This document shows, one piece after another, positions 7,801 to 38,766 of a stretch of 64,000 bases of DNA. This stretch comes from Entomortierella parvispora E1425 (taxonomy: Eukaryota; Fungi; Mortierellomycota). Within the stretch, counting starts at the first letter, position 1. Each line of letters opens with the position of its first letter. The stretch lies in contig BQFW01000003.1 of NCBI GenBank assembly GCA_020891255.1, positions 806,001-870,000 on the forward strand. The letters are read 5' to 3'. The notes under the pieces are model-generated. The model saw only the letters and a list, made by a program, of their open reading frames with translations. It searched no databases and was not told where the DNA came from. Both the position numbers and the translations under genes were made by a program.

Positions 7801-9456
7801 ATGACCACCTCCATGTTCAAGACCGGAATGAACAGGTCCCTACTGACCAAGGACTTTTTTCAGACCATCCTTGATCGAGCATATGGCCCCCGTGCTGTTC
7901 AAACAAAGTCATGGTCCGAGAGAGAGCTCGACTCATCATCAAGCATCCTGAGCAGCATCAGCTCCGGTGATGATGATGACAACGACGATGATTATAGTCA
8001 AGAACCAGCTGCTCTTTCCACAGCATCCTCAGACGAAAAGGAACCGTGCCCGATGAACGACATGACGGGCCATTTTTTGTACAAGATCGAATACACAAGC
8101 TCATCAACCCACACCCGCTCTTCACCATCCTCATCAACATCATCAACATCATCACGGTCCCCACTCTATCTCGATCCATTCTCGTCCCCATTCGCCGGTG
8201 CGGCTTCTTCCAGCTCAATTTCTATCGCAGCCACAAGTCAAACAGACACGCAGCTCGCTTGTACGACCCCCTCATCAGACGAAGGCGAGCTTTGGGTCGT
8301 GATCAAATCCAAACCCATCGACACGGCTCTGATCGAGCTCACAAACATCATGGCCCAGCTTCAAGGCGGTGATCTGGCGGACGAATACGAAATGGTCAAG
8401 GACATGACCGGGTTCAAGAACAGTCATGTTCGCGAAATGGAGCTAGCCGAGCTGTCATGGGAGGTTCAAGGGGCCATGGAGAGGATCTCTACCAAGGTCT
8501 ACAATGTCCTTCGAAACGATAGTCAACAACTCTACGCCCTCTGCCTTGAGTACTTGGACCCCTCCATGGGCAACATCACCCATCTCAACAGTACCGATTC
8601 GGCCCTGACTGCTTGGTCACCCAATGACATTCACCTGGTGATGCGAGACTTGGCTTCCTTCCATGCTCAGTTCCTGGGTCAAGAAGAACGCCTTCTAGAC
8701 ATGTCATTTCTCGAGAATCCTACGCGATCCTCGATGAAGACGCTGCGCCCCGCGTACGAGGCTATGATCAAGACCAATGGCAAGAATGATCCAGAGCTTT
8801 TCTCTAGTTATCTGACCCAGTGCACACTTGAATACCTCGCTCATTCGGACGAACACTGGGCCACAATAGAGAGAAATCCAAGGACTTTGGTAAATATCTC
8901 TTTCTTTTTGTTTGTCATTGTCGACACTTGCGCTCTCTAGCAGTCGTGATTCTAACGTCTTTTTTTTTTTTTTTTTTTTTTTGTTCAGATTCATGGTGAT
9001 TTCAACACGCGAAATATCTGCATGCGACTCGATCCTAGCACTGGCGCACAGACTCTGTGCGCCTATGACTGGGAGCTAGCCTGCTGTCAAGTACCCCAGC
9101 GCGATGTCGTCGAGTTTCTTGCGTTTGTGCTCCCTCCAGGCTCGAATGAGTGGGAACATTACATTGAGTACCACCGCTTGGCCCTCAAAGAAGCATACAA
9201 GAAGCAGTGCTCATCATTGTCGTCACAGTCTTCGCGACAAGTGACCATTCCGTCGTCACAAGAGTATGCAGAGGCGGCGAAAATTGCCCTCATGGACTTT
9301 GCGTCCCTCCGTCTGGCTATGTACGGTATCTCCAATTCGTTCAAGAGTGTAGATTGGCTTCCAAGAATTATCCAGTCGGTTGAAGGACAGCTGAAGAAGA
9401 TGGGCCCCCTGCGATCTCGGCACAGCGACAGAGTCCTCCAGTATGCCAAGTTCTAA
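7801..9456 (+). CDS. APH/choline-kinase-like small-molecule phosphotransferase, about 518 aa (exons 7801-8889, 8989-9456)
   Basis: Splicing restores the catalytic loop IHGDFNTRN (HxDxxxxN), followed by YDWE. N-lobe VVIKSK. Ser/Asp-rich insertions in the N-terminal part. Confidence 0.8.
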
Positions 9457-9793
9457 AAGTGGTTTCCATTCGACTGCAGCGACCCTGATTCATTTATTAC
9501 CCTCACCCAAAGCACATCCCTTTGCATTTCATTCACCATCGCATTTAGACCACGCCCCAAAAGTATTATGAATAAACGACGTTATACCGCGTTATCATGA
9601 GTTCATTTCCATGTTTGGCGGTTGCGAACCTCTTTGAGAACCACACCCATCGATGAAGCAGAGAAATAGTCGTCTAAGTGCATGCATGCACAAGACTGTA
9701 CTCAGAGGAGACGTTCAATAATTGCAGTGGAAGTGAGGGGAGGTTCCTTTTTTATTTTTATTTTGTTGTCTATCATGGGAGTGTGTCATGTCA

Positions 9794-11154
9794 TCATATA
9801 TTCGTCTTTTCTGTTTCCGCCTTCAAGATGGTTTCGATCACGAATCGGCGATAAAAGTACGTTCTGTCCTTGGCCGTGGCAGCATCTGACAACTCTACCT
9901 CAGAGCGGATCAAGTCCTTGAGGGCCTCGGGTCTTTCTCTTGGCACAAACAAGTTCCAATAGCAGATTCTGGCATCCTTGGTACCCTTCTTGTGGATGGC
10001 TTCCAAGAAGGTCTTGAACAGATCTTCTCCCATCCACTCAAAGATATCTGAGAGGTTGTATCCATCAAACTCGCCACTCTCCTCCGATTGAAGGTACTTG
10101 AGCACATCGGCTTGCTTCAAGGTCACGCGATCGATCCTAGACCGGATCGTGTCATAGTTCTCTCGTACCAGATAATCTGGCAAAGAGTTCTTGCCCGCCT
10201 GCTGGCCAGTGAAGACATACTCGGCGTAGAAGTTGTCCTGAAGAGGAATGTTTCTGATGCCGTTGTTGATCTTGCCCAAAAGGAAAGCGCCCACGTCAAG
10301 ACGAACGTGCTCGAAAAACTTTGGATCACGTCCAAGATGTCCCAGTGACATTTGACCAAAGAAGACACGAGTACCTGCACGCCAGATCCAAGTGTTCCAG
10401 ACAGAATCAAAGTACTTGATCTGCTCGGGTTGGTTCTGACCATTCAGTAGTGTTCGGGTGGCGGCCTGGGAGTGGCACAGGGGAAGGACGTACTTCCTGT
10501 AGAGACCAAAGAACCGCTCGAGACGGCCAATGTGAATGATCTTGTTGCGGATCAGCTCCAGGTTCTCGTCCCAATACCGCCGGTGCTCGGCATTGGTCAA
10601 CGCCACGCGGACCTTGTCCTGGTAAAGATGGACCCGTCCCTCAACCCCAATGTCGTGGCCATTAAACTCAAAGCCAAGGAGCTGGGTGAACTCTTCGTAT
10701 TCCAATGTCTTGTAGGCAGCAATCTTCAAAGCGCACAAGGCCAACTGAGCGGGGCTGAAATCTGGAAGACGAGATAAAAAAAAAGTGAGTGAGGGGAGGA
10801 ACAAAATAAAGATTTTCGCTTTTTGATTGGCGTCCATTTCTTACCGATGGCAACAACTTCACGAGCATCGTCAAGGAGAAGTGCAAAAGCATTGTCACCA
10901 GCAGAAGCGATACTGAGGACTCTGCTTTGGGGCTTCAATCGGAGACCCTGGCGCAAGAGGCGGGTGTCCTCCCAGACCTGGGAATAGCGGATCTTTGAAA
11001 AGTCGACCGTTGCCTCTACGGTGGCATCTTTGCTGGACTGGACCGTCTTGCGACCCAGGGATTCGTGATAGAGCTGGACTAGCGTCGAGATGATGCGGAT
11101 ATGAAGAGGCAGAGCCTTCTGTGGTGCAGCTGCCGTTGTTGATGTGGTCGTCAT
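9794..11154 (-). CDS. Stand-alone BtaA/DUF3419-family SAM-dependent 3-amino-3-carboxypropyl-transferase-like protein, about 425 aa (exons 11154-10845, 10761-9794)
   Basis: IRYSQVWEDTRLL, RVLSIASAGDNAFALLL, spliced VVAIDFSPAQLAL, NLSDIFEWM and RICYWNL are DUF3419/BtaA-type motifs. No separate BtaB methyltransferase domain. Confidence 0.8.
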
Positions 11155-12178: not shown

Positions 12179-13600
12179 ATGTTGACCAACCTTCACAGCA
12201 GTCATTCAGACTTCCAGCAGGGGACTGTCCGTCCCCTGCCTATGTCCGCCGTTTACAACAAACAACAGTTTATCTCGCAGTTCGCGTCCCTTCATCATCT
12301 CAGCACACAGCCAGCGCTTATCCATCAGCTTTTGACGACGAGGCTACCCAATATGTTTGTAGAGTATTGGATCCTCTATGACGATTTCAATCAACCCATT
12401 GCCTGTGCGGCTGCCAACACGGTCATTTCGGACATGTCAGTGGGCTATGTGGGCCTGTTTGAGGCCAAGGATGAGCTGGCTGGCATCTCAGTCCTGAAGG
12501 CCGCCACAGCGTGGCTGCGCGGCGGCGGTCTCCAAGAGTTTGAACCCGTGCGTCAGATCCTGGGGCCGGTCAACTTGACCACCTGGCTCCAATACCGAAT
12601 TCGAGTCGATGAAGATCCAGCCCAGTCCATGTCCTTTGAACCCAGACATCCGCGGTTTTACCAATCGTGCTTCGAAAAGGTACAGGTCGTTTCCTTGAGT
12701 TATCTCTTTTTGTTGTGGAATACTTGACTAGACTACTCACTGGCATCTCGTTGGTAGGCTGGGTTTACCAAGGCTGTTGATTACTACACAACGTTTTTCG
12801 AGATTGATCAACTGATCCACGGCTACAGCTCTTATGTTGGCAGAGACACGGTGGAGGATCTGGGCCTGTCTCTGCAATATTGGAACACTCTCAACTTTGC
12901 GGCCTCGCTTGTGCCCGAGCGACACCCAGGATTGACGGACGAGGACAATGTAGCGAGGCGAGTTTATGATCTCTCCATTGAGCTCTTCCGTGGCAAGGAG
13001 CTTTTTGACGAGTCCCTCTCGCGAAATCACCATCGGCAGCTTGTCTTGAACGATATGATTTCCCGACCCGAGGTCGACAATAGTTCATTATTGGATCTGT
13101 CATCGTTCCTGCGGGATCCAAGAACGGGAGAGGACCTTGGATATCTTGCCTGCTGGATTGAGAACGGTACAACATTGGTGTTAAAGACAGTCGGATATGT
13201 GGAGAAGGTCCGAAAGACAAAGGTCTTTGCTATGGCGGTCCTGGAGACGTTGAAGCGGGCCAGGGACCATTGGGGTTGCTCCAAGGTGGCATGTGCGTTA
13301 ATGAATGAAAGCTCGGCTGGTCTGTCCGAGCGCGTCGGCGGCGAGAGCATTCGCCATGTTTACCGCCTCTATTACCACCAACTCTCCGATCCCAGCTCTG
13401 TTAGCATGGCAGCTGCACCAAAGACAACTGCAGCGACAACAGACAAAAAACACCATGGATTGAAAAGGCATCCAGCCGCGGCTACGGTCCAGGTATCATT
13501 GGAGGTTTCAGGTCCACAACGCCAGCAGCAGCAGCAGCAGCAACAACAACAACACCTCTTTCACCGACGACAGCCTAAAAGACCTATGGCTCGACTTTGA
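12179..13600 (+). CDS. GNAT-fold-like protein resembling bacterial YghO-type proteins, about 447 aa (exons 12179-12679, 12758-13600)
   Basis: GYVGLFEAKDE...VLKAATAWLR...ILGPVNLTTWLQYR...SFEPRHPRFY...AGF pattern. A GT..AG intron joins the two ORFs in frame. The start could instead be the later Met (MSAVYN). Confidence 0.6.
13523..13552 (+). repeat. (CAG)6(CAA)4 polyglutamine microsatellite in the GNAT-like C-terminus
   Basis: Directly visible; encodes Q10. Confidence 0.9.
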
Positions 13601-13869: not shown

Positions 13870-16788
13870 ATGGAGCCACCACCGCAGGACAAGGACACAT
13901 CAGGAACAGGACTGGAATCACTCTCATCCGATAGTGATGATGATTGTACGAGGGATTGAAAACATGCCCGCTGGATGCATCAGACATCACTTGTATATGA
14001 GACTTACCATGGAACGCCCTTTTTTTCCTTGCTCTTTTGTTCTATGCAGTGCGCCAACTGGAAGAAATCTCGCGTCTGAAAGCGCAGCTGGAGGCTAGAG
14101 TTTTGGAGAAGCAACGGAAGAAAGCCATGGCCAAAGCTTCTTCATCTAGCGATACTCAAGTGGCTCCACTTCCAAGCAAAGAAGGTCTTACGGATGGTGT
14201 TCGAGAAGGAAAGACTGAACCATCGTCTGCACCCATCGAGGTCAATCCGTTCATGGAGACAACCCCTGCTCCAGAACAGGGCAAACAGCGAGCAATCTCA
14301 GGACTCAAATCAAAACGACCCGTAACGACTCCTCCAACTGTAGGCACTCCCTTGATCTCGCCTGGGTACCATATACCTGTCCGTGATCCCGGATTCAGAA
14401 CGCCTTCCCCTCCACCTCGTAGCCGATACGACAACTCACCATCATCAGGAGCATATACACGGTCAAAGAAAAGGCAGCACAGCCCATCGCCTTTACCTCG
14501 ACAAGCGCCCATGTCCGCTCAGCTTGTGAGGAGACCCGTGGCCGTGCCTGTATCTGAGGCTCGGAGACTCTTTGCTGACCATACAGGTACAGCAAATGCT
14601 CCAAATGCGACCAGTCAGCCAGTTTCATCTCCTCAGTCCGCTAGCTCCTCACAGTCTCTCCAGCCGTTGAGGCCGACAGGAACGTCGACTAGCACCCCCA
14701 GCAAACTGGACGATTTCGAAGACTTTGAGTTTGAAAACTTTCCTAGTGATGACGACTTTGATGTCTTGTCGCCTGTAAAGCCCAAAGTGGTCCCTCCTAC
14801 TGTCTTCGAAGATGATCCTTTCAATCCCGTAGAACCGGTAAAGAAAGCACCAGTGGTGGCAGCCACCAGTAGACCACCTGGAGGCAAGTCTACAGCTGTA
14901 CGGAATATAACTGCGCCGAGTCAGGCACCTCGTGGGATGGCGACGACATCAGCGATAACGACGGCAAGCGACATAGTTGACACGGACCCTGTTTCTGGTC
15001 TTCGGATACTGTAAGAACAATAGAGTCTCCTTTTCTAGTGGCGGGTTTTTTTTTGGTCTGACCTATTTACTGACTCCCTTTCCCCACCCTCCAACCTCTA
15101 GTCATCGTGTTGTCCCAAAGGAAGAACTCGCACAGTTGACACAGAGTGCTCGAATTATACCCCTGAAAAACTACGAGCAGATCCGTGAAAAATGCAATCG
15201 ACCGACCATTGGCTCGGCGCCCTCTTACTCTAAACAGGACGAAAACAAGGAAAACTGGGGTTTGACAGGTGTCATTGGGGCGAAGTCAAAACCACGCAAG
15301 ACGGCTCAGAACACAGTGCACAGCTTGTTTCGGCTGTGCGACTTGAGCGGAGCCATAGTGAACTTGTTCATGTTCAAGCCAGTGATGGATGTGCACTACT
15401 CCAAGTTGCAAGTCGGTGATGTCGTAGTGGTCCTCAATCCTGACGTGCTCACTCAGGCAGACGTAAGTATTTCAACTGTGGCGTGGTTGGAGAGTTTGTT
15501 TCGAAGTATGAATCTACAAGATAACAAAACTCAAAAATGATATCTCTTTTTCTCTCTTTTTCGTTATAGCGATCAGGGCCAGTGGGGATCAAGGTTCAAC
15601 AGCCGGAGGGCATCTTCCGGATTGGCAAGAGCAAGGACTATGGATTGTGCGAGGCTGTCAAGCTGAACAATGAGAATTGCGGCCTGATGGTCGACAGGAG
15701 GGCATCCATTTACTGCACTCACCACATCATGACGGCAACAGACAAGCAGCGCAACCAACGTGGAAGTCTAATTGCCGGGACGAGTTCAATCTACGACTTG
15801 GAAAAGAAAAGACCAGGCGTCCACACTGCCTCCTCCACCATGCCAATTCGAATCGGAGGTCCTCAACACACTGCGCGCCGAAAGATCATGGATCCTGCCT
15901 CCACCAAAGATACGACTTATATATTCGATAATGGCAGTACAGGCTCTTCTTCGATGACTCAGCCGACCAAAAAAACCAGAACGAACGAACCCGTAGATGA
16001 CGACTTGTCCTTGTTCTTGATGAGCCAAAATAATCCTGGCGGTCAATATCTACGACAGGCCAAGAGTAGTGGCGATGTGACCTTGGCTAAAGAATTGACC
16101 TCTCCAAGTAAGAACTTCCACCCTGCTGATCAAGGACACTCTTCACCTTATGTTTGAAAAATACTCTCTAACACTCTTTTACTGTATCTTGTCCGTAGAG
16201 CGATCGACAACACCTAAAGAAATGTTCCCAGCAGAGATGGTTCGGCGGATGGGATACGATCCAGTTACAGGACAATTCGTACCTGGAAGTCCACAGCGCG
16301 GCCAGGACGACCCTGAGGCACGAGAACGCTCCATTCGGATGCTGGCGGAGAGAGTCAAGTCGCCACCGAGTGGAGGTCGTATCCGGGATTTCATGGGCAA
16401 AGGAAAAATTTTGACACCAACGAAACGGAAACTGGACTTTGGGCAGCCAGACGTTGCGTCCAAGAGTGCTAAGCTGCCCTCTGGTCGTGAGGTCTCGGGC
16501 AGCGTCTTCTTTGATGACGCAGAAGATGCGCCAGAGAAGGACAAGGGTGGTGAGACAAAACGGTGGATCGACCTTGATGATGGTTCCAGTAGCAGTGGAA
16601 GCGACGAGGAGGGACGGGGCCAAAGTCCTTTGCTTTCATTACAGGAGAAACGGGCTTTGAATCTCCGGAATGCAAGTCTATCAAAGAAACTTGCAGCCTC
16701 ATCGACATCCACTGCCTCCCCAGTCAAGGCAACAACAACCGTCCCTCTTCAGAAAACACTTCCGTCCAAGAGCGAACCCAAGGAATAG
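13870..16788 (+). CDS. MCM10: MCM10 DNA replication factor, multi-exon
   Basis: OB-fold segment (NWGLTGVIGAKSKPRKT...LCDL...VNLFMF...LQVGDVVVVLNP) and CCCH zinc finger (IGKSKDYGLCEAVKLNNENCGLMVDRRASIYCTHH). Confidence 0.88.
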
Positions 16789-16920
16789 AAATGGCTCAAT
16801 TAGTCGAGTGTGTTTCTACCCTTTGCGAACTTGTATAATTAACAAACAATCGCCATGGAATTGAAGGCTTTTAGTTCGGTATTGCTGGCCAGCCGTTAGA
16901 GTAAACAACAATGATACCCC

Positions 16921-16922
<2 letters not shown>

Positions 16923-16958
<36 letters not shown>
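16923..16958. repeat. Poly(T)/poly(A) tract of about 36 nt
   Basis: Directly visible homopolymer, the longest in the window. Confidence 0.9.
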
Positions 16959-17930
16959 CAAAGATCATTGTGCCATTTCAGATACAATTTTGACGCTTTC
17001 CTCCACTTCTTTTGCTGTTCCTCGTTGACCGCAATCGATGGTTGATTCGCTTTGGTTCGCGACTTCATTCTTTCCTCCACTCCCTCGCCCTCAATTCCAG
17101 ACCCTGATCTCTCTACTGTCTCATAGACCTCCCTCCCTCCCTCCCTTTTTCTTTGCAAGTCCTCGTTCCTCATTATCACCGTTGTTTTTGGAAGGGATCA
17201 AGAGCGCAAGTAAGAGAAAATACACATTTCAAGAGGAGACTTATAAACTCCGTAATCCAAACCATCCCGTACCTCTCTTCTCTCATTGGTATAAAGATCG
17301 CCAATAAAATGGATATGGAACAGGACGCCCTGGAAAACTTCCTGCTCTGCCGGTGAACGTTCGCCTAGCCGGTACAAGACGACTGCCAGTCGCCTGGCTT
17401 GGGTTTATTGAGAGATCAATGACTAACTATACGCTCAATGTTGTAGAGCTCGGACATGTTCCTATCTGTCTGACTGTTTGTCTCATGAAACGCAAGGACA
17501 CGCGTACCCCCAGTGGCCAATACGACACATCCTCGCAATTCGTCAAGTCCAATATCAATCTTGAGTCGGCTGTCAAGGACTCCAGACGTGTCGTAAGATC
17601 GCACTTTGCCCCGTGCTATGGTTTGCATGTATCGCTGCAGTTGTTCCATGTCTGCTTGCTTGATGGACTCCAGGGTCACTGTTGTCCACCTACGGTCCTC
17701 CCGTGACAACTGGGCTATGCTACGATGTTGAGGAAAGAAGAGGAGGAAGTGAAGGTAGTTTTTGTACCATATTGGAGGCGAGTCTGTTGACAGATGCAAT
17801 ACGACAATATCATTTATCAGACTCTGCCTGGATCAAGGTGAAGATCACCATGGAAGTCTTGACAACATCGACGATCAGAGCTTCATCCTCTGTTAGCAAA
17901 CGATGTAGGCCGACCTGGTCAACCCTACCC
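16958..17930 (-). other. Possible small spliced gene or gene remnant of unknown function
   Basis: Protein-like segments (HRLLTEDEALIVDVVKTSMVIFTLIQ; LESIKQADMEQLQRYMQTIARG...LYNIE) with candidate GT/AG junctions. No recognisable domain. Confidence 0.25.
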
Positions 17931-20900
17931 TCTGATCATCACTCTCTTGATCTGCTGCTGTATGGCAGAGGAAAAAAATAGATTGACGCGTGAGCGGTAG
18001 ATGACAAAGGCACAAACAGCCCTGCTTTCGCCCTCACAGTAAAGTTGAGGCGAGGGGCAATAGAACAGAGCAGTCGTGAGCACAGAACTACTGCAGCCGG
18101 TGCCTTTTGACAGAAATGGCAATCAAACAGCGTGTAGCGCAACGAGCCCCATATTGAAATCAAACGCAGTGGTGGATGGCAACACCCGCACAAAAAGTGC
18201 AGATAAACACTCATAGTGATACCCGACACAGACGCGAAGGCAAAATACAAATCAACAAGCCGTCGAGGCCCAACAAAGCTGGGAAAATACGAATGCTGTA
18301 TAGTTAGTGCTCAGTTGCCATGCCTTGTTGACGCTTAATGTTTGTTGCTGTGTCTTTGTTGTTGTTGTGTCTTTGTTGATGAGAGGATGAGAGACGCGTC
18401 TGTAGAAAAAAGGCGAGTCACAGAAACGAGGTCAAAGCGCCTTGTACCTGCACCGAACAGCTGCAACCACTCAATCGGTCCGCGGGAAAGTTTGCACCTG
18501 GACCACGTTGATGGAGTCATATGTTCGGCGGAATGAAGGATTACGGACTCAGGGGCGACATTGCTTGTGTCTCTGCCCACCAGCATTGACTTCATACCTG
18601 GCCATTGTTACGCCATCATCTACCTAAACATCTCAGGCCTCAGCTGTTTGTGATAAGGGGAACAGGAAGAGGGGAAAGGAGAAGGGTTAACAGAATCACC
18701 CCCCAGCCATTACGGTAGATACGTTAGTTCCCGTATTCTTGAAGACACCGCCCATATCCAAGTCCGATCTTCGACACATGAGAGTCTGGGCCATGACGCA
18801 CTGGTATCAAGGGGCTGCTAACGGTTTTTAACCATCGCCCCCCTCAGCCTCCTTTGGACGTTACTAAAACGGACGGCTGATGCATGGATGAGCCATATGT
18901 GGTCCAAGATATCCCAAGCGGTTCATCCCTACCCTAACTGCCGAGGTGATCGATCGAGGCTGGAATACAAGGCACTGATACATATGGACACAACTTTGCA
19001 GCAAGAAATTAAAAGAAGTGCCAAATGTGTGCGCCGTCGCCTGTGCTGCGTAGTGGCCAAGCACAAAGAAGTTTCAGGCATAGCTGTGGGTTGGTATCAT
19101 TTGCAACTCCACTTCCAGAGCTCAACTCGCGTGCATGAGTGACTCGGTCCATTTCAGGGCGCAATGGATGGAGCACAGTGCTTCGGACAAATTATAGCGA
19201 TGGGTGCTTCTATTGGCTATTAACAAATAATCGGGGTATGGTTCTATTTGGACCCCAGCCGCGCCTTGCAGGGTCAAATCTTCTGTGTACGTTGTCAGCA
19301 CTATCTCTATACCTCTTGTGTACACACTCTATCAACAGCGATGATGGTCGTTGGTTCTGAACTCCTCATCTTCAGCTGAAGGCCGGATTTTCGAACCGGG
19401 TCTGCTATTGTCATTACTCGACTACTAATCAAAGCGATGGCGTAAGATAGATCACTGACCTCTTAGACAGAACCTCATGTTTTACCTCTCTATGGTACCA
19501 TGGTACACTTCGGTCTTGATAATTGCTGCGCTCGAGCAATTTTTGTTTTGACACTTGGCTATCAGCCCATTGAGCGCGATGGCTTTTTCAAAGATATCGG
19601 CGTTTGTCCACGGAGAAGGGGACTTGCACCGCCAAGGATCAAGAAAAACCCGTGAAGACGCGCTCTGGCGCAGTGATCTTCTGACCTAATGCTCAGTTTG
19701 TTAAAAAAAATGAGAGAGAACGGAAAATGCAAACTGATAAGTTCTGGACAGAGTTGCTTAGGTCAATATGGATCCAATTCTATGGACTGGAGCATCATTT
19801 TTATTGTTAACGAAACTAGAGGTACCCATGCCATCCATTATTAATTTTTAAGAATAGAAGACCGCGCGTTAAAATGATGAAGAGGGGAAGAGAAGAAAAG
19901 ATAGCCAAAGTAGAGTGAGTAATTGCTGTTGAAGAAATGGTTTACAGAAGGGAAGGCACATCCATTGCGATCTTTGGCAGCGATCCTTTTCTGTTGGATG
20001 TTGGCACGTGTTTTTTTTTTTTTTTTTTGGTGGTGGGTGTAGAATAGGTTTGGATTGAGAGGAGAGCAAGCGAGCAAGCGGTTCCTTTGAACACCGGGGA
20101 TGAACACCGGGAATGAAGAACAGGCGGGATGCCGAACGAATGGATGTAAAACGGCAACCGAAAATATTGAGGTTCCTGGGTAAAAATCGTCGGCGCACAG
20201 TTCTTTGCTTGCATGCCGAGCTTGTGGCAAAAATCAGCTGGAGTTGAGGCGAGCCTTGTGAGTGGAACTGAGATAACGGGTAATCCATTTTTTCAACCTC
20301 CTTCTATGTACCTGTGGTACCTTTTTTGTTGCCTTGAAACGACCATCCGATCGCTTTCGGCGACCTGGGTGGTCCGGCAAGCCGAGCAGTCGACTTTCGC
20401 GAAGTGGCTGCGGAGCAAGAACATGTACTCTCGAGCAATTTGATCTCTTCCGAGAATGTACCCTTTCGAGAATGTACTTACCCATTGCTGATCCAAGAGC
20501 AAAGTCCAATTTTACGTTGAAGTAACATGTAAAGTGCAAACAGAGATTTCACCCATGGAGATTCTTTTGCTAAATGAAAAGGCCTACAGGTGATGGCACT
20601 CTCTGTCAGATATTATCCGGGGGTAAGGGTAACCATCATTTGCCGAAAGGCAACGTCGTTTTCCTCGCCGCCTTTGCAGCCTGCACCCTTGATTCAAGCC
20701 GAGAAAAGAGAGGAGCCAGTCTCCACCTTCAAATTGGAATTCAGAAAACCTGCATGCATGCCTTTCGACCGGGGCTGAAAAAAAATTTGGACACAAAAGT
20801 GAGCCTGTCTCCACACCGAACCTGTGGAATGCGGCTGTTTTTCTCTTTCTCTCTTGTGATAATTCCTCTGCTCCTATTCTGGGAATTTGGGAGCCGTACC

Positions 20901-24900: not shown

Positions 24901-27776
24901 CTCTCTGCATTTGCACCCCGCGTCATGTCTCATCGTTTGGCCTGTGGTCTACCCGTCAACAATGTTCGCATGGGTGTTGTGGTTCAAATCATGGTTGACT
25001 CTGAGTCCGCCGGTGTGGCATTTTCCCGCCACCCACTGAACCCCATCAGTGCCAATGTTGCTTTAGTTGAGGCTGTCTGGGGCCAAGGCGAGGCGTTGGT
25101 CAGCGGTGCTGCAGAACCAGACTCGTTCGAGGTCGAGCGTGGTCCCAGTGGCAAGGTCAAGGAGACTCTAGTCCCTAAACCAAAGATGTGGATGCGAAAC
25201 GCTGGTCAAGGATCTAATGGTGCAGATGCCACCGGTCTCGTTGCAGTGGATGTCCCTGAGCCCAAGGCCAGCGCTGCTGCCTTGACGGTCGATCGTGCTC
25301 GCGCTGTGGGCATGACGGTTACTGGACTCGAGTCTTTGATTGGCATGCCTGTCGACTTTGAGTGGGCCTTCCAGGAGGAAGACTCAACCCTTTACTGTCT
25401 TCAGGTCCGCCCAATCGTCAACTTGCCTCCATCTTCCTTCTTCCTGGCGACAGACCCTACTGCTCATTCCGAGGTCTCCTCGGAGACAGAGCACTCTGAG
25501 TCTGCGATCTCCAGCGATTCATCCATCACCATTCCATCGTTGACCAAGACTCCTAAGGAACCCAAGGGTATCAAGAATGATCTGATTGACATGACTTCGA
25601 TCGCAGGCCGCGCCATGGACTCCCTTACAGCGGCACCTCAAGGAATGAATGTTACTCTTTGGGACAACTCCAACATTGTCGAGTCCTACTCTGGTGTCAC
25701 CACTCCGTTGACCTTTTCGTTCGCCTCCTACAACTACCGTATCGTTTATGAAACGATGCTCACATTCTTGGGCACGCCGCCCAAGTTGGTCCAGGCGAAT
25801 GAAGATGCTCTCGTCAACTTGCTCGGCTACATTCGAGGCAATGTCTACTACAATCTCATGAACTGGTACCGTCTGCTGCTCCTCGCTCCCCTCGGCAAGT
25901 TCTCGGACCCGAAGCACATGGAGACCATGATGGGTGTCAAACAGGGCCAAGAAGGAAATGCCGATATGGAGAAGGAATTTAAGAAGATCTTGGACAGCCG
26001 CTACAAGTTCAATGCCTGGCATCGGACCAGACTTGTGCTCAAGTACATCTCCGCCTACAGAAACATTGACCGGATCGTCAACAAGTTCTTTGCCAACTTT
26101 GATGCTTTTTACTTGGCCGGTCGCGAGATGGATTTCTCAGTCATGTCGCTGCAAGAGATCTCAACCTACTACCGCAAGAACGCGAGTACTCTTTTGAGGG
26201 ATTGGAAGGCCCCAGTCATCAATGACCTTTTAGTCATGGGTTTCTTTGGCACTCTCAAGTCGTTCATTGCTAAGCATCTAGTTGAGCCCAAATCTAAGGC
26301 ACCCGTTGAGGGTGCAGCTGCTCCCACCGCTGAGGAGGCAGCGGCAGCGGCAGCCGATGCTGCGGCGGTGGATTCTCTTCAGAATGATCTTCTCTGTGGA
26401 GAGGATGTAGAGTCGGCCAAGCCGACCAAGATGTTGATGGAGATTGCAAAGACAATCGACACTACAATCGAGTACCCAGCTCTGGGCGCTTGGTTTGTCG
26501 GACACAAAGACGAGATTTTGAAAGCCATCAAGCCAGAGGAGAACCACTGGATCTTGCGCTCCACAATTCTGAAGCGCTCGTTTGTGAAAGCAAGCGAGCT
26601 TTTGGCTGGACTCAGAAAGACGGAGCCCGGAAAGGATCTTGAACAGCCACCCGTTCAGGTGGTGGCCGACGTTTTGGCCATGATCTTGGAGTTTTTGGAC
26701 TCTTATGGTTTCCGATGCATCAATGAGCTCAAGCTTGAGGAAAAGGACCTCAACGATGATCCCGGTATGTTTTATTTCACCTCTTGTTCCCCAGTTTACA
26801 ATCCGAGAAATGTCGGCTGAACTCTTTTTTTTTTTTTTTTTTTTTTTGTATTCGTGTAGCCTTCGTGATTGATGCTATTGCAGGTTACGTTCGCACCAAA
26901 GCCTATGAGGTCGAGGACTTGGACAAGCGTGAACAGCAGATCCGTGCTGCTGCTGAAGCACTGGTACACCAGAAACTTAAGGGAACCCAATTGGTGCTCT
27001 TCCTCTGGCTCTTGCGCAACACTCGTCGTGTGGTGAAGCATCGTGAGAACTTGCGTTTCGCTCGCTCCAAGGTCTTTGGTGTCATGCGTCGTATCTTCCG
27101 AGGCATGGGTCGTCAGCTTGTTGCCCTTGGAGCGCTCGAGACTGAGCAGGATGTTTTTTACTTGACAACGGAAGAGCTCATGTCCTATGTTGATGGTCGT
27201 GCCGTTTCCCGGGATCTCAAGGCTCTGACTCGACTTCGCAAGTCCGAGTTTGACGGTTACCTTGCAGATGCAAACGCCCCTCCAGAGCGCTTCGTCACCC
27301 GTGGTGCCGCGGGTGTGTACATGTGGTACCCTCATATCCTCGCAGACCTTGATCTCCTCAAGGACACCGAGGACTCGAACGGCCCTCCAGAGCCTGGTGT
27401 CCTCAAGGGAGTCTCTTGCTGCCCCGGTGTGGTCGAAGGTGTGGTTCGAGTCGTCAAGGACATCACAGAGACAAGAGATTTGGACGGCGAAATCTTGGTC
27501 ACGGCCAGGACCGACCCTGGCTGGGTTCCTTTGTATCCAATGTGCTCTGGTCTCTTGATTGAACGTGGATCACTGCTGAGTCACTCGGCTGTGGTGGCCA
27601 GAGAATTGGGTCTGCCCACGATCGTGGGCATTTCTGGTGGGCTGATGAAGCGCCTCAAGACTGGAATGAAGATCCGAATGGATGCTGGAAAAGGCAAAGT
27701 CTATATATTGGACGAGTTGGAGGCCTTGGAAAAGGAAAAGCAGTCAGGAGAAGGCGTTGAAGTCGCTGCTGCTTGA
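21940..27776 (+). CDS. Fusion enzyme of about 1,835 aa: OleC-like adenylation (AMP-binding) domain + PPDK_N ATP-grasp + central substrate domain + C-terminal phospho-His swivel domain (exons 21940-21960, 22054-22670, 22812-26764, 26860-27776)
   Basis: Adenylation motifs SFTTGSTGNPK, FYGASE, WLRTGD, LPRDKRHASKI. PPDK_N motifs GGGKAKNM, AVRSSGADED...SFAGQFDSFL, GQGEALVSG, DFEWA...LQVRPI. His domain GSLLSHSAVVARELGLP (His codon 27582-27584). The four exons sum to 5,508 nt, in frame. Confidence 0.87.
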
Positions 27777-31616: not shown

Positions 31617-32816
31617 ATGGAGAGTCACAAGTCTAAAGAATCACTGGCATCCTCAACAGCAAGCAGTCGTCAAGTCGATGTCTTTGTTCAATTCTCAGGG
31701 TAATTGGTGTCTCTTGCTCCATTGCCGTTGTCTTTTCTGTTCTGTGCACAGACCGACGAGTTCCTGACATGCCAACGCTTCACCTATCTTCTAGTTACAA
31801 AAACTGGCTCAAGTTCTTTGGTGAACGTGTCGCCTTATTCGTCTATCTCTTGACGGCAGCAGGATACACTCTCTCTGGATTCTATGCTTTGGCCACAGGC
31901 AAAAGCCTCGCCGGCGTTTGGCCTTATGTTATCTGGATCGTCATCATCGAAACTCTCTTCCTCGTCACCCTCCGAGTCATGGACGATCTGAAGGACGTTG
32001 ACACTGTAAGTCATGAGCAATGATCTGCTTTACTCTGACAACCAAAAAAAAACTATGAGAAAACTCTGACAATAACCCCCTCGCCTCCCCTAGGACATCC
32101 TCGCTCACCCTGAACGTCCATTGCCCCGTGGTCTGGTCACCGCCCGCGAGGCTAGCTTTGTGGTCCACGGCTTGGTGCTAATCCTGATTGCGAACGGAAT
32201 CGCTCTTGCGATTGTCAAGAACCTTGCCTCGGGCCTTCTTTGCATCGCCACTACTGGATACTATTACCTCATGTTCAAGGAGTTTGGCTGCGGTCACTGG
32301 CTCAGTGCACGCCCTATCCTCTATGTGATTACTCATCAGCTTGTAGTCTTGCTCATGGTCCTCTTGCCCGTGGCAACGTTCTGGGGTGCCTCTTCTCTGA
32401 AGGGTATCTTGGCCTGGCATGTGGCCTTACTGCAGTTTGGAGGATCGTTCACGTTCGAGGTCTGCCGAAAGCTGGACCCAACTGCCCACGTGGCTCTTAG
32501 CACCTATTTGGTGGCATATGGCAAATTCAAGACGTTCTTGATGATCTTGTTTGCTGTCGCGATCGGTGCCTGGGCGTCGTACGTGATGGCGGTTGAGATC
32601 ATCATGTGGCCCTTCCTGGGCTTCCTGTTGCTGAGTGTCTTGGTCTTGTTTGCAGGCCAGAGAACTCCGGGAACGCCACTGGCAGAGGGAGAGAAGGCAC
32701 CCAAAGGTCACAAGACCGTCGAGTTGATCTGCACGCTGATCACACTCTTGACTATGTACATTGTCCCCATCAAGTTGTGGAGCGGCGTTCCCAAGACGGC
32801 GATGCGCACTTTCTAA
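31617..32816 (+). CDS. UbiA-superfamily intramembrane prenyltransferase-like protein, about 338 aa (exons 31617-31699, 31795-32005, 32094-32816)
   Basis: Splicing restores LRVMDDLKDVDTDILAHPERPLPRGLV (Asp-rich motif plus RPLPxG). Multiple hydrophobic helices. The exons sum to 1,017 nt, in frame. Confidence 0.82.
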
Positions 32817-33056: not shown

Positions 33057-34921
33057 TCAATCTGCCAATCTGACGCCGACATGCACTCCAGGGACAGGCT
33101 TTAGGCTGACAGACCATTGCCATGCTATTTCGCCCTTGGCCGCTTGCAACTCGGGTGTTTGAACAAATTCAAATTGGTTCACAAGGTTGGCCAGATGGGT
33201 CTTGATCTCTAGTGTTGCCATCTTGTTACCGATGCAACCTCTTTTGCCGTGGTAGAAGGGAAAGTAACAAAGTCCATTTGGTGGTACGTAGGGCGGGCAC
33301 GGTTTGTCTGTGGACAGCCAACGATCTGGGTTGAATTCCAAAGCATCGGGCCCCCAGATTTTGGGGTCGCGTTGGAGAATGAACATGGGGATCTGCAGGT
33401 TGGTACCGGCTGGGACAAAGAGAGGCTCTTGTCCGTAGGCGCGGGGAAGATGGTCATCTTCGACCGATACTCGGAGATTGAGCTAGGGATAGGGGTTGTG
33501 TATATGTTAATCAAGAGTGATGGACGAAAGCAAGATCACACGAATGGTCAATCGGGTTCTTACAGGAATTGGGGACCAGAGGCGAAGACTTTCGCGGACA
33601 ACGGCGTTCAAGTATGGGAGCGAGTTCAAGTCATCATACAAAGGCGAGCCGTTTGTGTCCTTGAAGAGCTGTCTAGTTTCTTCTCGAAGGCGGGACTGGA
33701 TATCGGGGTTGCTTGCTAGCTGATAAAATGTCCAGGACAGGGACGCAGATGTTGTTTCCTGAGCATTGACCAAACAAAAAAAAAAATCAGTTTGTGATAC
33801 CATGATCGTCCAGCTCAAGAGACTGTGGAACAAGGACGTACATGTCCAGCGAAAATGGCTGTAAAGACATCGTGTCGGATCTGTAGATCCGAGACGCCCT
33901 CGCCTACGAGCTGATCCACCAGTAACATGGTCAGCATGTCTTTCTTTTGACTTGTGGCCCCCTCATCTGTTGAGAACTCTCCATTGTGGTCTTCTATCTC
34001 TTTGATCAGGGCCTGCTTCCGGGTCCTCACAATCTCATCCATGGACGCGTTAAAATGTCGGACCGCCGTCCATGCGCGCCGATTTGTCCTTGTCGGGATC
34101 CAGTTGGAGAATGGCAACAATGTCAAAAGTGAGACCTTGAAGGACTCAACAATGATTCTATAACTCTCGAAATCTTCCCCGATCGGACTCTTGATCGCGT
34201 CAAAACCTTGGCCAAGGGCAAACTCGCCGATCGAATCCAAAGTCAGGCTGTAGAACCAAGGTTCGAGATCTACGGTCTTGTACAGCTTGCCATTGAGCTC
34301 CCATGCTGTCCCTGGACTTGAGGTTGCCTTGACCTCGTCTTGGATCGGTAGAACGCCGCCCACCGGCTCTGAATCTTCTGCGCCCGCGATCGCCGCTTTT
34401 TTCTTCCATTCGTCGACCAGATCTTGTGCGACTCTTTGGAAAGCGACCGTCATGGATTTGAGATAGGTGTGCTTGAACCCCTTGGCGAGATATTTCCGAT
34501 GAGACGTATGCTCTGCACCCTTCATCGACAAGAGCGATGAACCCAGGTTTTGTTCAAACATGTCTTCTGTGCCTTTGCTCTTGAGCCAGTTGTCGTTGGC
34601 CTTGCCGAGGACATAACCGACCGTGACCGGATCGGACGTCAAGAGTGTCAAGCGGGTGAACCAGTAGTAGCGGTAAATCGAGCCTGGGTATTGCATTGCC
34701 CAGTCGTACAGTGCCATCATTGGTTTCTTTTTGGTCAGGCCGACCATATTGCCGAGGAACCAAATCTTGGACGGCTTTGGGCCAGGAATGTGAGTGAGTG
34801 GATCAAGGACAAAGGGGTAGAGCCATGTCTTGTAGATGCCATAGGTGAGCACCGTTGCCAGGGCTACTGTGAGGGAGAGGACCGGAGGGGCCTTTTCCAG
34901 GGATGATTTGATGAAGGTCAT
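33057..34921 (-). CDS. Cytochrome P450 (microsomal type), multi-exon
   Basis: N-terminal membrane anchor followed by IPGPKP, I-helix AGH/ETTS split by an intron, ExxR (ESLR), FNPDRW and heme motif FYHGKRGCIG. Confidence 0.93.
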
Positions 34922-36977
34922 TTTTTTCTTTTTGATCTTGGATCTTGGGGGTCTTGGTCTTGGTCTTGGATCTCTGTCTGTGTGTGCGCTTGTCAAAACT
35001 GAAATTTGAACACTCGGTCGTCTTTTGTCTTATTTGTTCTCGAGTCGCAGGAATGAAAGGAAAGAAGTCGAGGAGGAGGAGGAGACCTGGACGGCAAGTC
35101 CAAATGGAGCTTGACGGATGATGCAAAAGACTGGGGAGGTGAGGGGATCGCACAAAGGGCCGAGACTCCGGAGTCAGAGACTGTCTGTGTCAGATGCAAA
35201 CTTGATGCACAGTTTGCGTAATGATTGGGAGTGTAAAAAAAAAGGAAAGTCCAAAGAAAACAAAAAAGGCTCGACACAAACCAAGCCCAAGCCCAAACGA
35301 CAAAGACATGTGGGTGCGCAACGCACAAACACCGACAGAGTAGAGAGCATCCAACTGTCCATTGTATTGATGATGGTCTTAAGTGAAAAGATAACGAGTT
35401 AAGAGCAGAAGGGACCGTTCAGGTACAGGAAACTCAATTGCGACCTACGTTGAACTTTTAATTTGATAGGCTGTTTGCTTAACTTTTTCGCTCATTGTTT
35501 GTATCCCGTTCCATGTTTCTTTTAGAATAACGACCACCAAACAAACGAAAAACAAGCCAACTAAAGTCTGAGCTGCGCGGAATTGCAAACCTGTGAGCTC
35601 TCTCCCCGGATCTTGCAGTCTACAAATCGACACAATGGAACCGAAAAAAAGCGCGTGCATGCATGTTTGTCTCTTCTGTGGACGAACAATTGAGAGCCAA
35701 ATCGGGGTTATTCTTTCAATCATTTAAACACACTGTGGTCTGGTTCTTTTTTTGTTGTTTAGTTTTCAGCCTTGTCCATTTATGACAACTCCCATGCCGT
35801 CCGCGGCTGAGTTTCCAATGTCCGTTAGATCCGGTGGAAGAATGATGAAAGTCTATGGATCGAGAGTCTGGAAAGTAATCAGCCTCCATTCAACCAAAGT
35901 CCGGTGAACGATTCCTCGGCCCGATGCACTCCATACGCAGGGTGCTGAAATGAACAAGGAGGATGCCGGACGCCACAGTGCGGGATTAACAAAAACAGTT
36001 CAGAGTCCACGGACAATAATTCGGGCTGACAATCAAATGAATCCCGTCCGCAAGTTCTTTGATCAGGGCTGAGGATTACACTCCTCACACACATCCTGTT
36101 TATTTTCCTCTTTGGCGCCGGAAATTGGCGGTACCCAGTCCACTGAGAGAGCAAACCATGAAGAAACATGGATGGGTCATTTTCCATCCCGCACAAATGG
36201 TGTAGAAGATAAGCCCATTCGTTAAAAGTAGGTTGCCTGTTCGACGGGGTGGCGAAATGGGGGTAGGTACAAGAAGAAAGTACCAATTGAGATTTTGTGT
36301 GTTAACAACAAAAAGAATTTGCTTAAACGAAAACGGACTCTCTTTCCATTTAGCACATGTCCATGGTATGGGCGTCTTATTCTTTCATCTCCTTACATTT
36401 GATTCAGTCCATTGACTGACTCAACCATGACATGTCTACCACTTGATCGGCAGTGTCGGCAAAGATAACGCTTGACACCCGGGGACATGGGTTATTTTGT
36501 TTCCTTGTTTTGTGTTTTCCTCGATCAGTTCATGGTCTGGCAGAGGTCTACGCATCTCGTCTCTGCGTAAAAGGGACAGGCGAGGATTCCAAAAGGAATC
36601 GCTCACTCTCCATTTGAGCAGCGTCAACTTAAAACAGACAATTGACTTCCGGTTCAAGTCAGTGCGTGAAAGACAAGAGATAATGGAGACGAATGGGAAG
36701 AAAAAGTAATAAAAGGCCGCGACCACTGCTCGTCGTGTGTACGACAAACAGTTTTTTTTTCTCTTCTAATTTGGCGCCACCAAAATTCACCACCATCACA
36801 TCCAAAGCGACAGGTAATGATCTCTTCATGAGGAGAATGGCATCCAACGAAAAACACACACATTGGAAACAATCACAAACACGCAAGCTAACAGCCCATT
36901 GTTTTCTATTTCCATCTCTTTTGTTAGCCATTGGACTCACTTCTGAATCAAACATCACCATCACATACAAAATAACA

Positions 36978-38766
36978 ATGTCGCCCTCCTCAACCAAGTT
37001 CGGCCCAAGCATGGCCAAAGAGTTTTACAACGAGAACACAGTTGTATTCCTCACAGGGGCCACAGGCTTTGTTGGCAAGACGGTACTCGAAAAGTTGTTG
37101 CGATCCTTCCCTCAAATAACAAAGTACGTCTTGTTCCCTCTGTCTTCAAATTCTTCGTGGCCTCGTTGTTCACACTTCTGATTCAGTTGACTGACTTTTA
37201 TCTTCATCCGACATTCATAGGGTGTATCTGCTGATGAGGATATCAGGAACCAAGACCCTACAGGATCGTGTCGAGAATGATGTTTTCGCTAGTCGCATCT
37301 TTGATACCTTGAAAGCGACGTTCAGCAGCCCACAAGAGTTCCACGATACCATTGTGAAGAAGATTGTGCCAGTCCAAGGAGACATTACCATTGACCGACT
37401 TGGACTCTCCGATGACGACTTGAAAATGATCCAGGAGGATGCCCGCATCGTCATCAACAGTGCAGCCTCTGTCAGTTTCGATGACCCATTGGGCAATGCA
37501 CTTGAGGTATATTCAGCGACAACGATGACGGAAGCGTGACACGCCATTGCATGGCATCGTCGGAGTTCTACCTTTTTTTTTTACTGACGTTCAAGACCCT
37601 TCGAACTAGATGAACACCAAAGGCCCATTCCGCACATTTGATGTCGCACAGGGAATCAAGCACCTCTCGGCCTTTATCCACATCTCAACCTGCTACGTGA
37701 ATGCGCCCATGTTTGAGCAACGAATTGACGAAACCATCTACCCTCACCCATTGGGCGAGCCGGAAGCCATTTATGACATGTTGACAAAGATGACCTACGA
37801 TGAGGTCCGGAATTACGAGAGAAAGGTCGTTCTCAAGACGTATCCCAACACGTATACATTCTCAAAGTCTTTGACGGAGCACTTGATCCACAACCGATAC
37901 AAAGCCATGGGCCTGCCCTTGGTCATTGTCCGTCCTTCGATTGTCACGGCCGCTGTTCAAGAACCAGTCCCTGGCTGGGTTGAAGGATCGGCCGCTGCGA
38001 ACAAGGCCGTGCTTTCTTGTGCCCTCGGACATGTCCAAGAATGGATCGGAGATGAGGTAAGTCCACATTGCTCCTTGCGCTGGTACTTGATCTTCACTTT
38101 TTTTTTTTACTGATGCCCGGTTGTTACCCCTTCATATTGCTATCAAAACAGACGGTCAAGACAGATCTCATCCCTGTCGATATTGTCGCCAAGACCATCC
38201 TCCTCTCTGCCACGACGGCCGACCGATCCCGACCTTCTCCCCCCATCTACCACGTTGGCACCAGCTGCCTCAACCCCATGACTTGGGGCCTCTTTGGAAT
38301 CTACGTGTCCGGTTTCTGGCGTGCTCAAGAGAAGCCGCGCAAGAGAACCTCAGATGACATTCGCTTTGACATGTTCCCAGCCCAGGAGTTCAAGCAAAGG
38401 TTCGATGCTCGGTTTGGCGAACAGATTCGCACCCTGGCACAAAACAAGGACGGAAAGAAACTCAAGATTCGCATCTCCAAGGCCATGGCCGTGCCCTTGA
38501 CCTTCAAGACCTTTTCTTGCAACCAATGGTTTTTCGACATTACAAAGACACTAGCGATGGATGATGCTGCCCCCAAAGAACTCAAGAGTGGATTGAGACG
38601 AGGCCTCGATTGGCATCGGTATATGGAGGATTACAATGCTGGCGTTCAAGACTTTATCCTCCGAGAGAAGGTCGATCGGACAATTCCCATTGATTACTCG
38701 GCCCAACTGCCACCACCGGTATCACAGACATCAGGACCAAAACCAGAAGTGGTTGCAAGACTGTAA
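36978..38766 (+). CDS. Fatty acyl-CoA reductase (alcohol-forming FAR/male-sterility family), multi-exon
   Basis: TGATGFVGK Rossmann motif, VINSAASVSFD, HISTCYVN, PNTYTFSKSLTE (YxxxK), IVRPSIV...PVPGW, DLIPVDIV and a C-terminal Sterile-like domain. Confidence 0.9.

Follow-up and report, generated by a model that had tools for sequence, protein, structure and literature searches.

A candidate lipid-type biosynthesis and export gene cluster shared by Mortierellaceae, chytrids and bacteria

INTRODUCTION

The described routes to betaine lipids, archaeal ether lipids, bacterial ceramides and olefins each share an enzyme family with a gene cluster at positions 7801–38766 of a 64,000-nucleotide stretch of the Entomortierella parvispora E1425 genome (assembly GCA_020891255.1, contig BQFW01000003.1, positions 806,001–870,000 of the forward strand; hereafter the window). 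The cluster encodes a small-molecule kinase, a DUF3419 protein, a GNAT-family N-acyltransferase, a fusion of an adenylating enzyme with a phosphohistidine dikinase, an ABCG transporter, a UbiA-superfamily transferase, a cytochrome P450 and a fatty acyl-CoA reductase (FAR). It is interpreted here, with a probability of roughly 0.78, as an ancient pathway cluster of bacterial type, kept in Mortierellaceae and chytrids, for the synthesis and export of an unusual lipid of membrane type.

With the btaA/btaB system for betaine lipids of the diacylglyceryltrimethylhomoserine (DGTS) type, the cluster shares a member of the DUF3419 family and a lipid context. It lacks BtaB, however; the amine seems to be acylated or formylated on nitrogen rather than methylated, and the pathway is much larger. 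Digeranylgeranylglyceryl phosphate (DGGGP) synthase creates an ether bond at the hydroxyl of a lipid. The archaeal enzyme (PDB 6M31/7BPU) is structurally closest to the cluster UbiA protein, in which the first Asp-rich motif is conserved, but identity is only 16–18% and the second Asp-rich motif is replaced. Moreover, the cluster belongs to bacteria and fungi and has neither geranylgeranylglyceryl phosphate synthase nor glycerol-1-phosphate dehydrogenase as a partner. In rifampin phosphotransferase (RPH) and in the prodigiosin ligase PigC/RedH, the likeness is to the dikinase, which has the same three-part architecture of a PPDK_N ATP-grasp domain, an Rph_4th domain and a C-terminal swivel-His domain. 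The cluster dikinase differs in being fused to, or directly following, an adenylating enzyme and UbiA, and in forming a clade of its own that includes fungal and sponge proteins.

The ebo operon, which contains a UbiA gene and is lipid-related, occurs in bacteria and in eustigmatophyte plastids. It resembles the present cluster in being centred on UbiA and shared between bacteria and one eukaryote lineage, but its partner set is entirely different, and the fungal cluster genes are nuclear and contain introns. With the OleABCD olefin cluster the link is the adenylating enzyme, whose best matches among NCBI models are the PRK09274 family of fatty-acid ligases and the OleC beta-lactone synthetase; these scores are far under the cut-offs, and OleA, OleB and OleD partners are absent. 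The bacterial ceramide pathway of Caulobacter comprises Spt, bCerS, CerR and the ceramide kinase CpgB (PMC9393093). The tandem GNAT of the cluster is nearest in structure to bCerS and YghO, and the bacterial operons described below carry a kinase of the diacylglycerol (DAG)-kinase/LCB5 type and NAD-dependent reductases. Serine palmitoyltransferase is lacking, however, and the amine would come from S-adenosylmethionine (SAM) via DUF3419, not from serine.

An initial annotation of the window had proposed that the cluster is undescribed. This agrees with the searchable literature: full-text searches, with subscription journals outside their coverage, found no description of the cluster or its product, and nothing resembling it is described in the Lipocone paper. 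NCBIfam holds no specific name for any of the operon members.

METHODS

Gene models were built from Pfam scans of the open reading frames (ORFs) of the window, spliced contigs of the public sequencing run X10 and splice-site modelling. Run X10 is RNA-like and carries the same species label, but derives from a divergent strain (about 86% identical). No RNA runs were listed for the exact sequence, which is found in DNA runs only.

Bacterial loci were gathered with the UbiA-like domain profile alone, in a scan of 185,579 species genomes. Bacterial counts given below cover 52 loci from more than 10 phyla-level groups, the Oligoflexus locus being excluded. Accessory families were defined by de novo clustering of the remaining ORFs of these loci, followed by Pfam and NCBIfam. 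Sizes of the UbiA-like subfamily are numbers of clusters at 50% identity in public sequence data.

RESULTS

The core trio in the window and in bacterial operons

The window is nuclear, intron-bearing DNA of a Mortierellaceae fungus. Pfam scans, transcript contigs and splice-site models placed all eight of the families named in the initial annotation within 7801–38766. As it had stated, these genes are interrupted by MCM10 and by a gap of about 5 kb only, and no polyketide synthase, non-ribosomal peptide synthetase (NRPS) or terpene cyclase was seen in the cluster in Pfam scans of the window ORFs.

Three enzymes form the obligate core: an adenylating enzyme, a DGGGP synthase-like UbiA protein and an RPH/PigC-type dikinase. 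They are joined in pairwise fusions, and the phylogenies of UbiA and the dikinase match. In the window the first and third are one protein of about 1835 aa, encoded by four exons (21940–27776, + strand), with an OleC/FAAL-like adenylation part and AMP-binding, PPDK_N and PEP-utilizers matches; it shares 67–92% identity with its counterparts in Mortierella, Podila, Linnemannia, Actinomortierella and allied genera. The UbiA gene (exons 31769–32005 and 32094–32816, + strand) encodes a divergent intramembrane transferase of the superfamily, at least 319 aa long, with PF01040 matches in its Mortierellaceae and chytrid orthologues.

The profile scan returned 53 bacterial loci, all in metagenome-assembled genomes. 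Most carriers belong to the Bdellovibrionota, and others to Chlamydiae, Omnitrophota, Planctomycetes, Verrucomicrobiota, Gammaproteobacteria, Nitrospirota, Spirochaetes, Fibrobacter, WOR-3, Acetothermia and Terriglobia. In 46 of the 52 loci the dikinase gene stands immediately downstream of UbiA, with two more cut by a contig end, and the adenylating enzyme lies directly upstream of UbiA, or is fused to it, in 42, with five more cut. The order adenylating enzyme, UbiA, dikinase is nearly invariant. Around this trio the accessory modules are interchangeable. The fusions seen are adenylating enzyme–dikinase in fungi, adenylating enzyme–UbiA in Oligoflexus and four other loci, HMG-CoA reductase–kinase, and alpha/beta-hydrolase–adenylating enzyme.

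Oligoflexus is the nearest bacterial relative that was looked up. It encodes an adenylating enzyme–UbiA fusion (752 aa), a dikinase (912 aa) and a GNAT (347 aa), followed downstream by a 406-aa protein, a LolA-like protein, a MacB permease, an ABC ATPase and DUF3419.

Accessory genes and the two kinds of operon

The most frequent accessory family is DUF3419, found in 28 of the 52 loci. A Formyl_trans_N-like protein occurs in 23 and a 680-aa protein, the C-terminal half of which resembles the PigE N-terminal part and acyl-ACP reductase, in 20. A lipid kinase of the YegS/DAG-kinase type is present in 16 loci, a thioester/FAR-like reductase with an NAD_binding_4 domain in 15, a GtrA-like membrane protein in 11 and a GNAT in 10 (11 including L005). 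P450s and alpha/beta-hydrolases, the latter often fused to the adenylating enzyme, are each found in eight loci, HMG-CoA reductase in six and a metallo-beta-lactamase (MBL)-fold protein in five. Three further loci, all gammaproteobacterial, encode a fusion of HMG-CoA reductase with an APH/EcKL kinase, and several loci carry exporters of the MacB/LolA-like or MMPL type. The initial annotation had suggested bacterial operons combining DUF3419, PEP-utilizer, AMP-binding, UbiA and kinase genes, the kinase often being fused to an HMG-CoA-reductase-like domain. The near-invariant trio and the 28 loci with DUF3419 bear out the first part of this suggestion, and the three gammaproteobacterial fusions, together with one in a chytrid, bear out the second. 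The P450, FAR-like reductase and exporters are recurrent operon members that go beyond it.

The GNAT and the formyltransferase-like gene are mutually exclusive, no locus having both, which divides the operons into a G-type and an F-type. In G-type loci including L020, L015 and L017 a single stretch contains a kinase, a FAR-like reductase, an MBL-fold protein, a P450, an adenylating enzyme–UbiA protein, a dikinase, a GNAT, DUF3419 and an ABC exporter. Every functional class of the fungal cluster is thereby represented, as in L020 from a member of the Bacteriovoracaceae.

Some loci from Omnitrophota, Planctomycetes and Nitrospirota (L037, L031, L038 and L046) have a second AMP-binding gene beside HMG-CoA reductase, and in this group a GtrA-like membrane protein adjoins DUF3419. 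In L037 (positions 1–2970) the second AMP-binding protein combines MFS, PlsC-acyltransferase and AMP-binding regions, as in the Aas (lysophospholipid) type.

Phylogeny

The split between GNAT and formyltransferase-like operons coincides with the deepest division into two clades in both the dikinase tree (59 rows) and the UbiA tree (53 rows); F-type and G-type clades separate with a support of 100 in each. Fungal UbiA proteins fall within the G-type (GNAT/P450) clade, where those of Mortierellaceae and the chytrid are weakly grouped (support 81). The eukaryotic dikinases all belong to a single clade (support 100), also within the G-type clade, and the fungal proteins are sister to sponge proteins. 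The latter are stand-alone dikinases of about 900–1000 aa, annotated as RPH- or PigC-like; the homologue in Oscarella lobularis (L058) had no cluster partner within 10 kb.

The introns, the conservation throughout the family and the presence in chytrids favour an old origin, so that an old acquisition or old ancestry would be a better account than recent transfer.

Synteny in Mortierellaceae and chytrids

At least 10 genera of Mortierellaceae share a neighbourhood of the cluster families. The family order is asparaginase-ankyrin gene, FAR, P450, UbiA, ABCG, fusion, GNAT, DUF3419, kinase, MBL-fold gene, MMS19, with local rearrangements. The interlopers are MCM10 in the window and TsaD and MMS19 in Actinomortierella wolfii; Mortierella sp. 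GBA30 has none. Most of these fungi have a tighter arrangement than the window, with the GNAT directly beside the fusion and MCM10 absent at that position. By NCBI locus tags, DUF3419 stands two genes and the P450 three genes from the fusion in eight or more species.

MMS19 lies between DUF3419 and the GNAT in A. wolfii, and its position inside the cluster there indicates that rearrangements happened within the neighbourhood. The asparaginase-ankyrin gene adjoins FAR in the window and likewise in A. wolfii and L. elongata; local synteny therefore reaches past the metabolic genes. Because it covers unrelated genes, synteny within Mortierellaceae is weak evidence by itself, and it is the chytrid and bacterial data that carry the argument.

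In Chytridiales sp. JEL0842 an ABCG gene, a GNAT, UbiA, an HMG-CoA reductase–kinase and the adenylating enzyme–dikinase fusion stand side by side. The GNAT and UbiA are homologues of those in the window, and the HMG-CoA reductase protein (869 aa) has a C-terminal half homologous to the window kinase. Pfam gave no match for a 688-aa neighbour in this cluster. In a second chytrid, Quaeritorhiza, UbiA adjoins DUF3419 on a 9-kb contig. The initial annotation had named a lack of linkage elsewhere as grounds against a functional cluster; the homologues are in fact linked in two chytrids and 52 bacterial loci.

Domains, motifs and structure models of the core proteins and the GNAT

The swivel-His motif of the dikinase is intact, and the surrounding sequence is identical across fungi, chytrid, sponge and bacteria. 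The PPDK_N ATP-grasp and C-terminal PEP-utilizers domains are accompanied by Rph_4th (PF27448), which is matched in orthologues. The best relative in the PDB is the Listeria rifampin phosphotransferase, and the NCBI models for PigC, RedH and RPH are matched at about 1e-106 to 1e-110, under their curated cut-offs. The adenylating enzyme belongs to PF00501, and its phosphate-binding loop reads TGSTGNPK in a close orthologue (P0004). Its nearest solved structures are NRPS-type and beta-aminoacyl adenylases.

The UbiA-like proteins form a discrete, divergent subfamily. Of 1.84 billion representatives searched, 3,041 belong to it at E <= 1e-3, or 1,232 at the stricter E <= 1e-30. The UbiA profile had no match among PDB sequences, and its placement is by structure comparison only. 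The AlphaFold2 model of a bacterial orthologue (pLDDT 95.9) shows an all-helical fold with multiple transmembrane segments and has DGGGP synthase, ApUbiA and AfUbiA as its top structural matches, with a TM-score of 0.67–0.75 against the archaeal DGGGP synthase. The first Asp-rich motif, D-[ED]-x-K-D-x3-D, is near-invariant. In the window it reads DDLKDVDTD and spans the intron.

The GNAT gene of the window (exons approximately 12182–12679 and 12758–13600, + strand) encodes a protein of about 446 aa which aligns colinearly with bacterial tandem GNATs. Acetyltransf_1 matches the bacterial and L. hyalina orthologues, and profile hidden Markov model (HMM) searches link the fungal GNAT to 16 loci. 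In the AlphaFold2 model of the Oligoflexus orthologue (pLDDT 87.7) there are two GNAT-fold halves, and the top PDB matches are tandem GNATs. The best Swiss-Prot structures are E. coli YghO (E 1.7e-17) and the Caulobacter bacterial ceramide synthase (TM 0.74/0.68). By this model the protein would be a ceramide-synthase-like N-acyltransferase. There is a poly-glutamine run near the C terminus, at about 13500–13570 of the window.

Kinase and DUF3419

The small-molecule kinase of the APH/EcKL type (518 aa; 7801–9456, exons 7801–8889 and 8989–9456, + strand) is matched in its second exon by EcKL (1.9e-4) and APH (0.008), and both families also match the orthologue in Mortierella sp. GBA30. It is homologous to the C-terminal half of the HMG-CoA reductase–kinase fusions of the chytrid and of the bacterial loci L021, L036 and L050, the last with an APH match of 1.9e-7. 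The N-terminal region of the window kinase (about 7950–8300) is long, serine-rich and of low complexity, and stands where the chytrid and bacterial homologues have their HMG-CoA reductase domain.

DUF3419, the BtaA-like family of SAM-dependent 3-amino-3-carboxypropyl transferases, is represented by a 425-aa protein (11154–9794, exons 11154–10845 and 10761–9794, - strand; Pfam 4.2e-43 and 4.3e-15). Positions 5–383 of the 385 of the PF11899 profile are covered over the two exons. Both Mortierellaceae and chytrids have orthologues; the top bacterial matches share 35–40% identity. The gene had initially been described as BtaA-like, and the full-length DUF3419 domain upholds this. As regards the substrate, the protein is only 28% identical (E 7e-30) to a Rhodovulum protein annotated as BtaA, and for this reason diacylglycerol should not be assumed. 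No BtaB-type methyltransferase was found among the cluster genes of the window, chytrid or bacterial loci; the partners of DUF3419 are instead a GNAT or a formyltransferase-like enzyme.

Transporter, P450 and FAR

The candidate exporter is an ABCG half-transporter (30390–28073, - strand; ABC_tran and ABC2_membrane). It adjoins the fusion, an arrangement conserved in Mortierellaceae and the chytrid. The P450 (p450 match; about 560 aa, at least three exons) extends from approximately 34996 to 33057 on the - strand, the upper coordinate being approximate, with its heme-Cys motif in ORF 33057–33386 and one exon 98% identical to E. parvispora EMPS_02337. Homologues were found in Mortierellaceae only, always three to four genes away from the fusion. 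Both the window P450 and the bacterial operon P450 place near CYP4/CYP97. The FAR (36693–38766, + strand; about 500–520 aa) has both the NAD_binding_4 and the Sterile C-terminal domain, and in A. wolfii and L. elongata it stands beside the P450. Its functional counterpart in bacteria is the NAD_binding_4 reductase family of 15 loci, to which sequence similarity is weak.

HMMs of the bacterial formyltransferase-like, acyl-ACP-reductase-like, DAG kinase, GtrA-like, alpha/beta-hydrolase, MBL, HMG-CoA reductase and MMPL families, and of the 406-aa protein family (U406), had no matches in the window, and those for the bacterial FAR and P450 gave generic matches only. These searches thus indicate no hidden extra members, nor do they point to orthology in the case of FAR, P450 or the MBL-fold gene.

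Expression

Contigs of X10 that lack the GT..AG introns were recovered for the fusion, kinase and DUF3419, and the GNAT is also covered; assembler word depths are 78 for the fusion, 52 each for the kinase and DUF3419, and 55 for the GNAT. The absence of introns from these contigs indicates that the genes are transcribed and spliced. They come from a single run with no condition series and document transcription, not co-regulation. One contig spans the convergent kinase (+ strand) and DUF3419 (- strand) genes with both introns removed (window 9419–9819), a sign of overlapping or abutting 3' ends.

Intervening and flanking genes

MCM10 (14037–16788, + strand; MCM10_OB and zf-primase matches) functions in DNA replication and is an interloper outside the pathway. 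It is followed by about 5 kb without a recognizable gene (16789–21939), where there are short ORFs only. Pfam gave no match for the ORFs of this gap or for ORF 35879–36286, and the gap showed no conservation in comparison with L. hyalina or A. wolfii.

Upstream of the cluster lies an MMS19 homologue (26–3870, - strand). Between it and the kinase, just outside the cluster start, there is an MBL-fold gene (4691–5685, + strand; Lactamase_B 8.6e-13), an orthologue of which adjoins the kinase in Mortierella sp. GBA30. It is a possible ninth member of the cluster. The HMM of the MBL-fold family of bacterial G-type operons (F9) does not match it. On the other side, an asparaginase gene with ankyrin repeats (38905–40230, - strand) adjoins FAR.

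DISCUSSION

A proposed pathway

That these genes constitute a conserved pathway of lipid-type biosynthesis and export is considered likely. The particular order of steps and the product that follow are distinctly unlikely to be the correct ones, and the scheme should be read in this light.

In the fungus, an activated acyl group would be reduced to an alcohol by FAR; in bacteria this step could fall to the acyl-ACP-reductase-like and thioester-reductase-like enzymes, or to HMG-CoA reductase. The alcohol would then be phosphorylated by the APH/EcKL kinase, or in bacteria by the YegS/DAG-kinase-type or reductase-fused kinase. From the His-swivel dikinase a further phosphoryl group might be added to give a diphosphate donor, or another hydroxyl might be phosphorylated. 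With the diphosphate as donor, UbiA would act within the membrane to form an ether or prenyl linkage. Through DUF3419 a free hydroxyl would receive the 3-amino-3-carboxypropyl group from SAM, and the new amine would be N-acylated by the GNAT or, in F-type operons, N-formylated or acylated by the formyltransferase-like enzyme. The adenylation domain could activate a carboxylate for ester or amide formation. The P450 may oxidize a chain, and together with hydrolases tailor the molecule. Export would be by ABCG or, in bacteria, by MacB with a LolA-like protein, or by MMPL.

The early steps draw on the alcohol-forming and phosphorylating genes, which occur in three modules. One comprises acyl-ACP-reductase-like and FAR-like enzymes with a kinase of the DAG-kinase type; another comprises an acyl-CoA ligase and HMG-CoA reductase, sometimes fused to an APH/EcKL kinase; and the fungal module consists of FAR and the APH/EcKL kinase. 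Three non-homologous modules for one task suggest that a phosphorylated alcohol is an intermediate. The product would be an exported, ether-linked lipid which bears an aminocarboxypropyl group and is N-acylated. The initial annotation had predicted an exported, alkylated or prenylated, aminocarboxypropyl-modified and possibly phosphorylated lipid, and the models of a DGGGP synthase-like UbiA and a ceramide-synthase-like GNAT would fit such a molecule.

A more specific version of the proposal is a hitherto unrecognized route to two-tailed aminolipids, resembling ceramides or archaeal ether lipids, which would be common to predatory and other uncultured bacteria, chytrids and Mortierellaceae. 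As the fungal dikinases share a clade with sponge proteins, such a pathway may date to early opisthokonts. The amine would derive from SAM rather than serine, and one tail would be ether-linked by UbiA, the tail alcohol possibly passing through reduction, phosphorylation and activation by the dikinase. This version is unlikely.

Several points weigh against a lipid pathway cluster of bacterial type. The proposed chemistry is drawn throughout from family membership, and saturated alkyl diphosphates would be unusual donors for UbiA. At the position of the second Asp-rich motif of UbiA, E..RK is conserved and not the canonical DxxxD. For the FAR, P450, ABCG and MBL-fold proteins of the fungi, orthology to members of the bacterial operons is not demonstrable, and their place in the pathway would depend on analogy of function and on family-level synteny, which also takes in the unrelated asparaginase-ankyrin gene. 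Fungal DUF3419, unlike UbiA and the dikinase, groups (support 100) with a subfamily from Omnitrophota, Planctomycetes, Chlamydiae and WOR-3. Since it thus belongs to a different bacterial subfamily, the fungal set would be a mosaic and not one transferred block.

Alternative explanations

Chance or historical adjacency, in which general fungal synteny holds together genes without a functional link, is consistent with a Mortierellaceae neighbourhood that also covers the asparaginase-ankyrin and MMS19 genes. The same families are nevertheless neighbours in chytrids and in many bacterial lineages of phyla level, and among the genera of Mortierellaceae the interlopers vary while the metabolic genes stay together; this explanation is close to refuted. 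The locus could alternatively be an island for the inactivation of xenobiotics or antibiotics, in which the RPH-like protein, APH, GNAT, MBL and P450 enzymes and an efflux pump detoxify independently. All of these families include known resistance enzymes, and it is a rifampin phosphotransferase, that of Listeria, which is the closest solved relative of the dikinase. Such an island leaves unexplained the obligatory UbiA, the adenylating enzyme, DUF3419 and the reductases, as well as the adenylating enzyme–dikinase, adenylating enzyme–UbiA and HMG-CoA reductase–kinase fusions and the matching phylogenies of UbiA and the dikinase, and is very improbable.

An equally small probability attaches to an ordinary phosphate-sparing pathway to betaine lipids of the DGTS type, with DUF3419 acting as BtaA on diacylglycerol and the other genes unrelated. 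DUF3419 is the BtaA family, and many metagenomic homologues are annotated as SAM:diacylglycerol aminocarboxypropyl transferase. The low identity to annotated BtaA and the lack of a BtaB-type methyltransferase among the cluster genes speak against this, however, as do the 28 bacterial loci in which DUF3419 is linked to the core trio and to a GNAT or formyltransferase-like gene. The core trio might instead make a soluble or pigment-like secondary metabolite, the dikinase catalysing an ATP-driven condensation as in PigC and UbiA adding a prenyl group. The scores of the dikinase against the PigC and RedH models (about 1e-110), the resemblance of the 680-aa bacterial partner to the N-terminal reductase part of PigE, and the NRPS-type and beta-aminoacyl adenylases that are the best solved relatives of the adenylating enzyme would all suit a product of this kind. 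No other prodiginine genes are present, however, and the partners (YegS/DAG kinase, FAR, acyl-ACP-reductase-like protein, ceramide-synthase-like GNAT and DGGGP synthase-like UbiA) are of lipid type, as are the exporters (MacB with LolA-like protein, MMPL and ABCG). A soluble product is accordingly improbable. None of these alternatives accounts at once for the fusions, the matching trees and the lipid-type partners.

Implications

The enzyme families of the proposed lipid pathway are all known; undescribed in the literature searched are their combination, its conservation across kingdoms and the product. The probability that the chemistry itself is of a new kind is not negligible. The cluster would define a new pathway for a lipid or amphiphile with a core of adenylating enzyme, UbiA transferase and phosphohistidine dikinase, a combination that no standard cluster predictor targets. 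The pathway is widespread, with more than 1,200 clusters of UbiA-like proteins at 50% identity (E <= 1e-30), and almost all of the bacteria in which it was seen here are uncultured. As the fungal copy resides in Mortierellaceae, which are cultivable, oleaginous and genetically tractable, the product should be discoverable. The finding bears on ether and amino lipid synthesis outside the archaea, on the roles of RPH/PigC-type enzymes beyond resistance, and on the sharing of genes between bacteria and early-diverging fungi.

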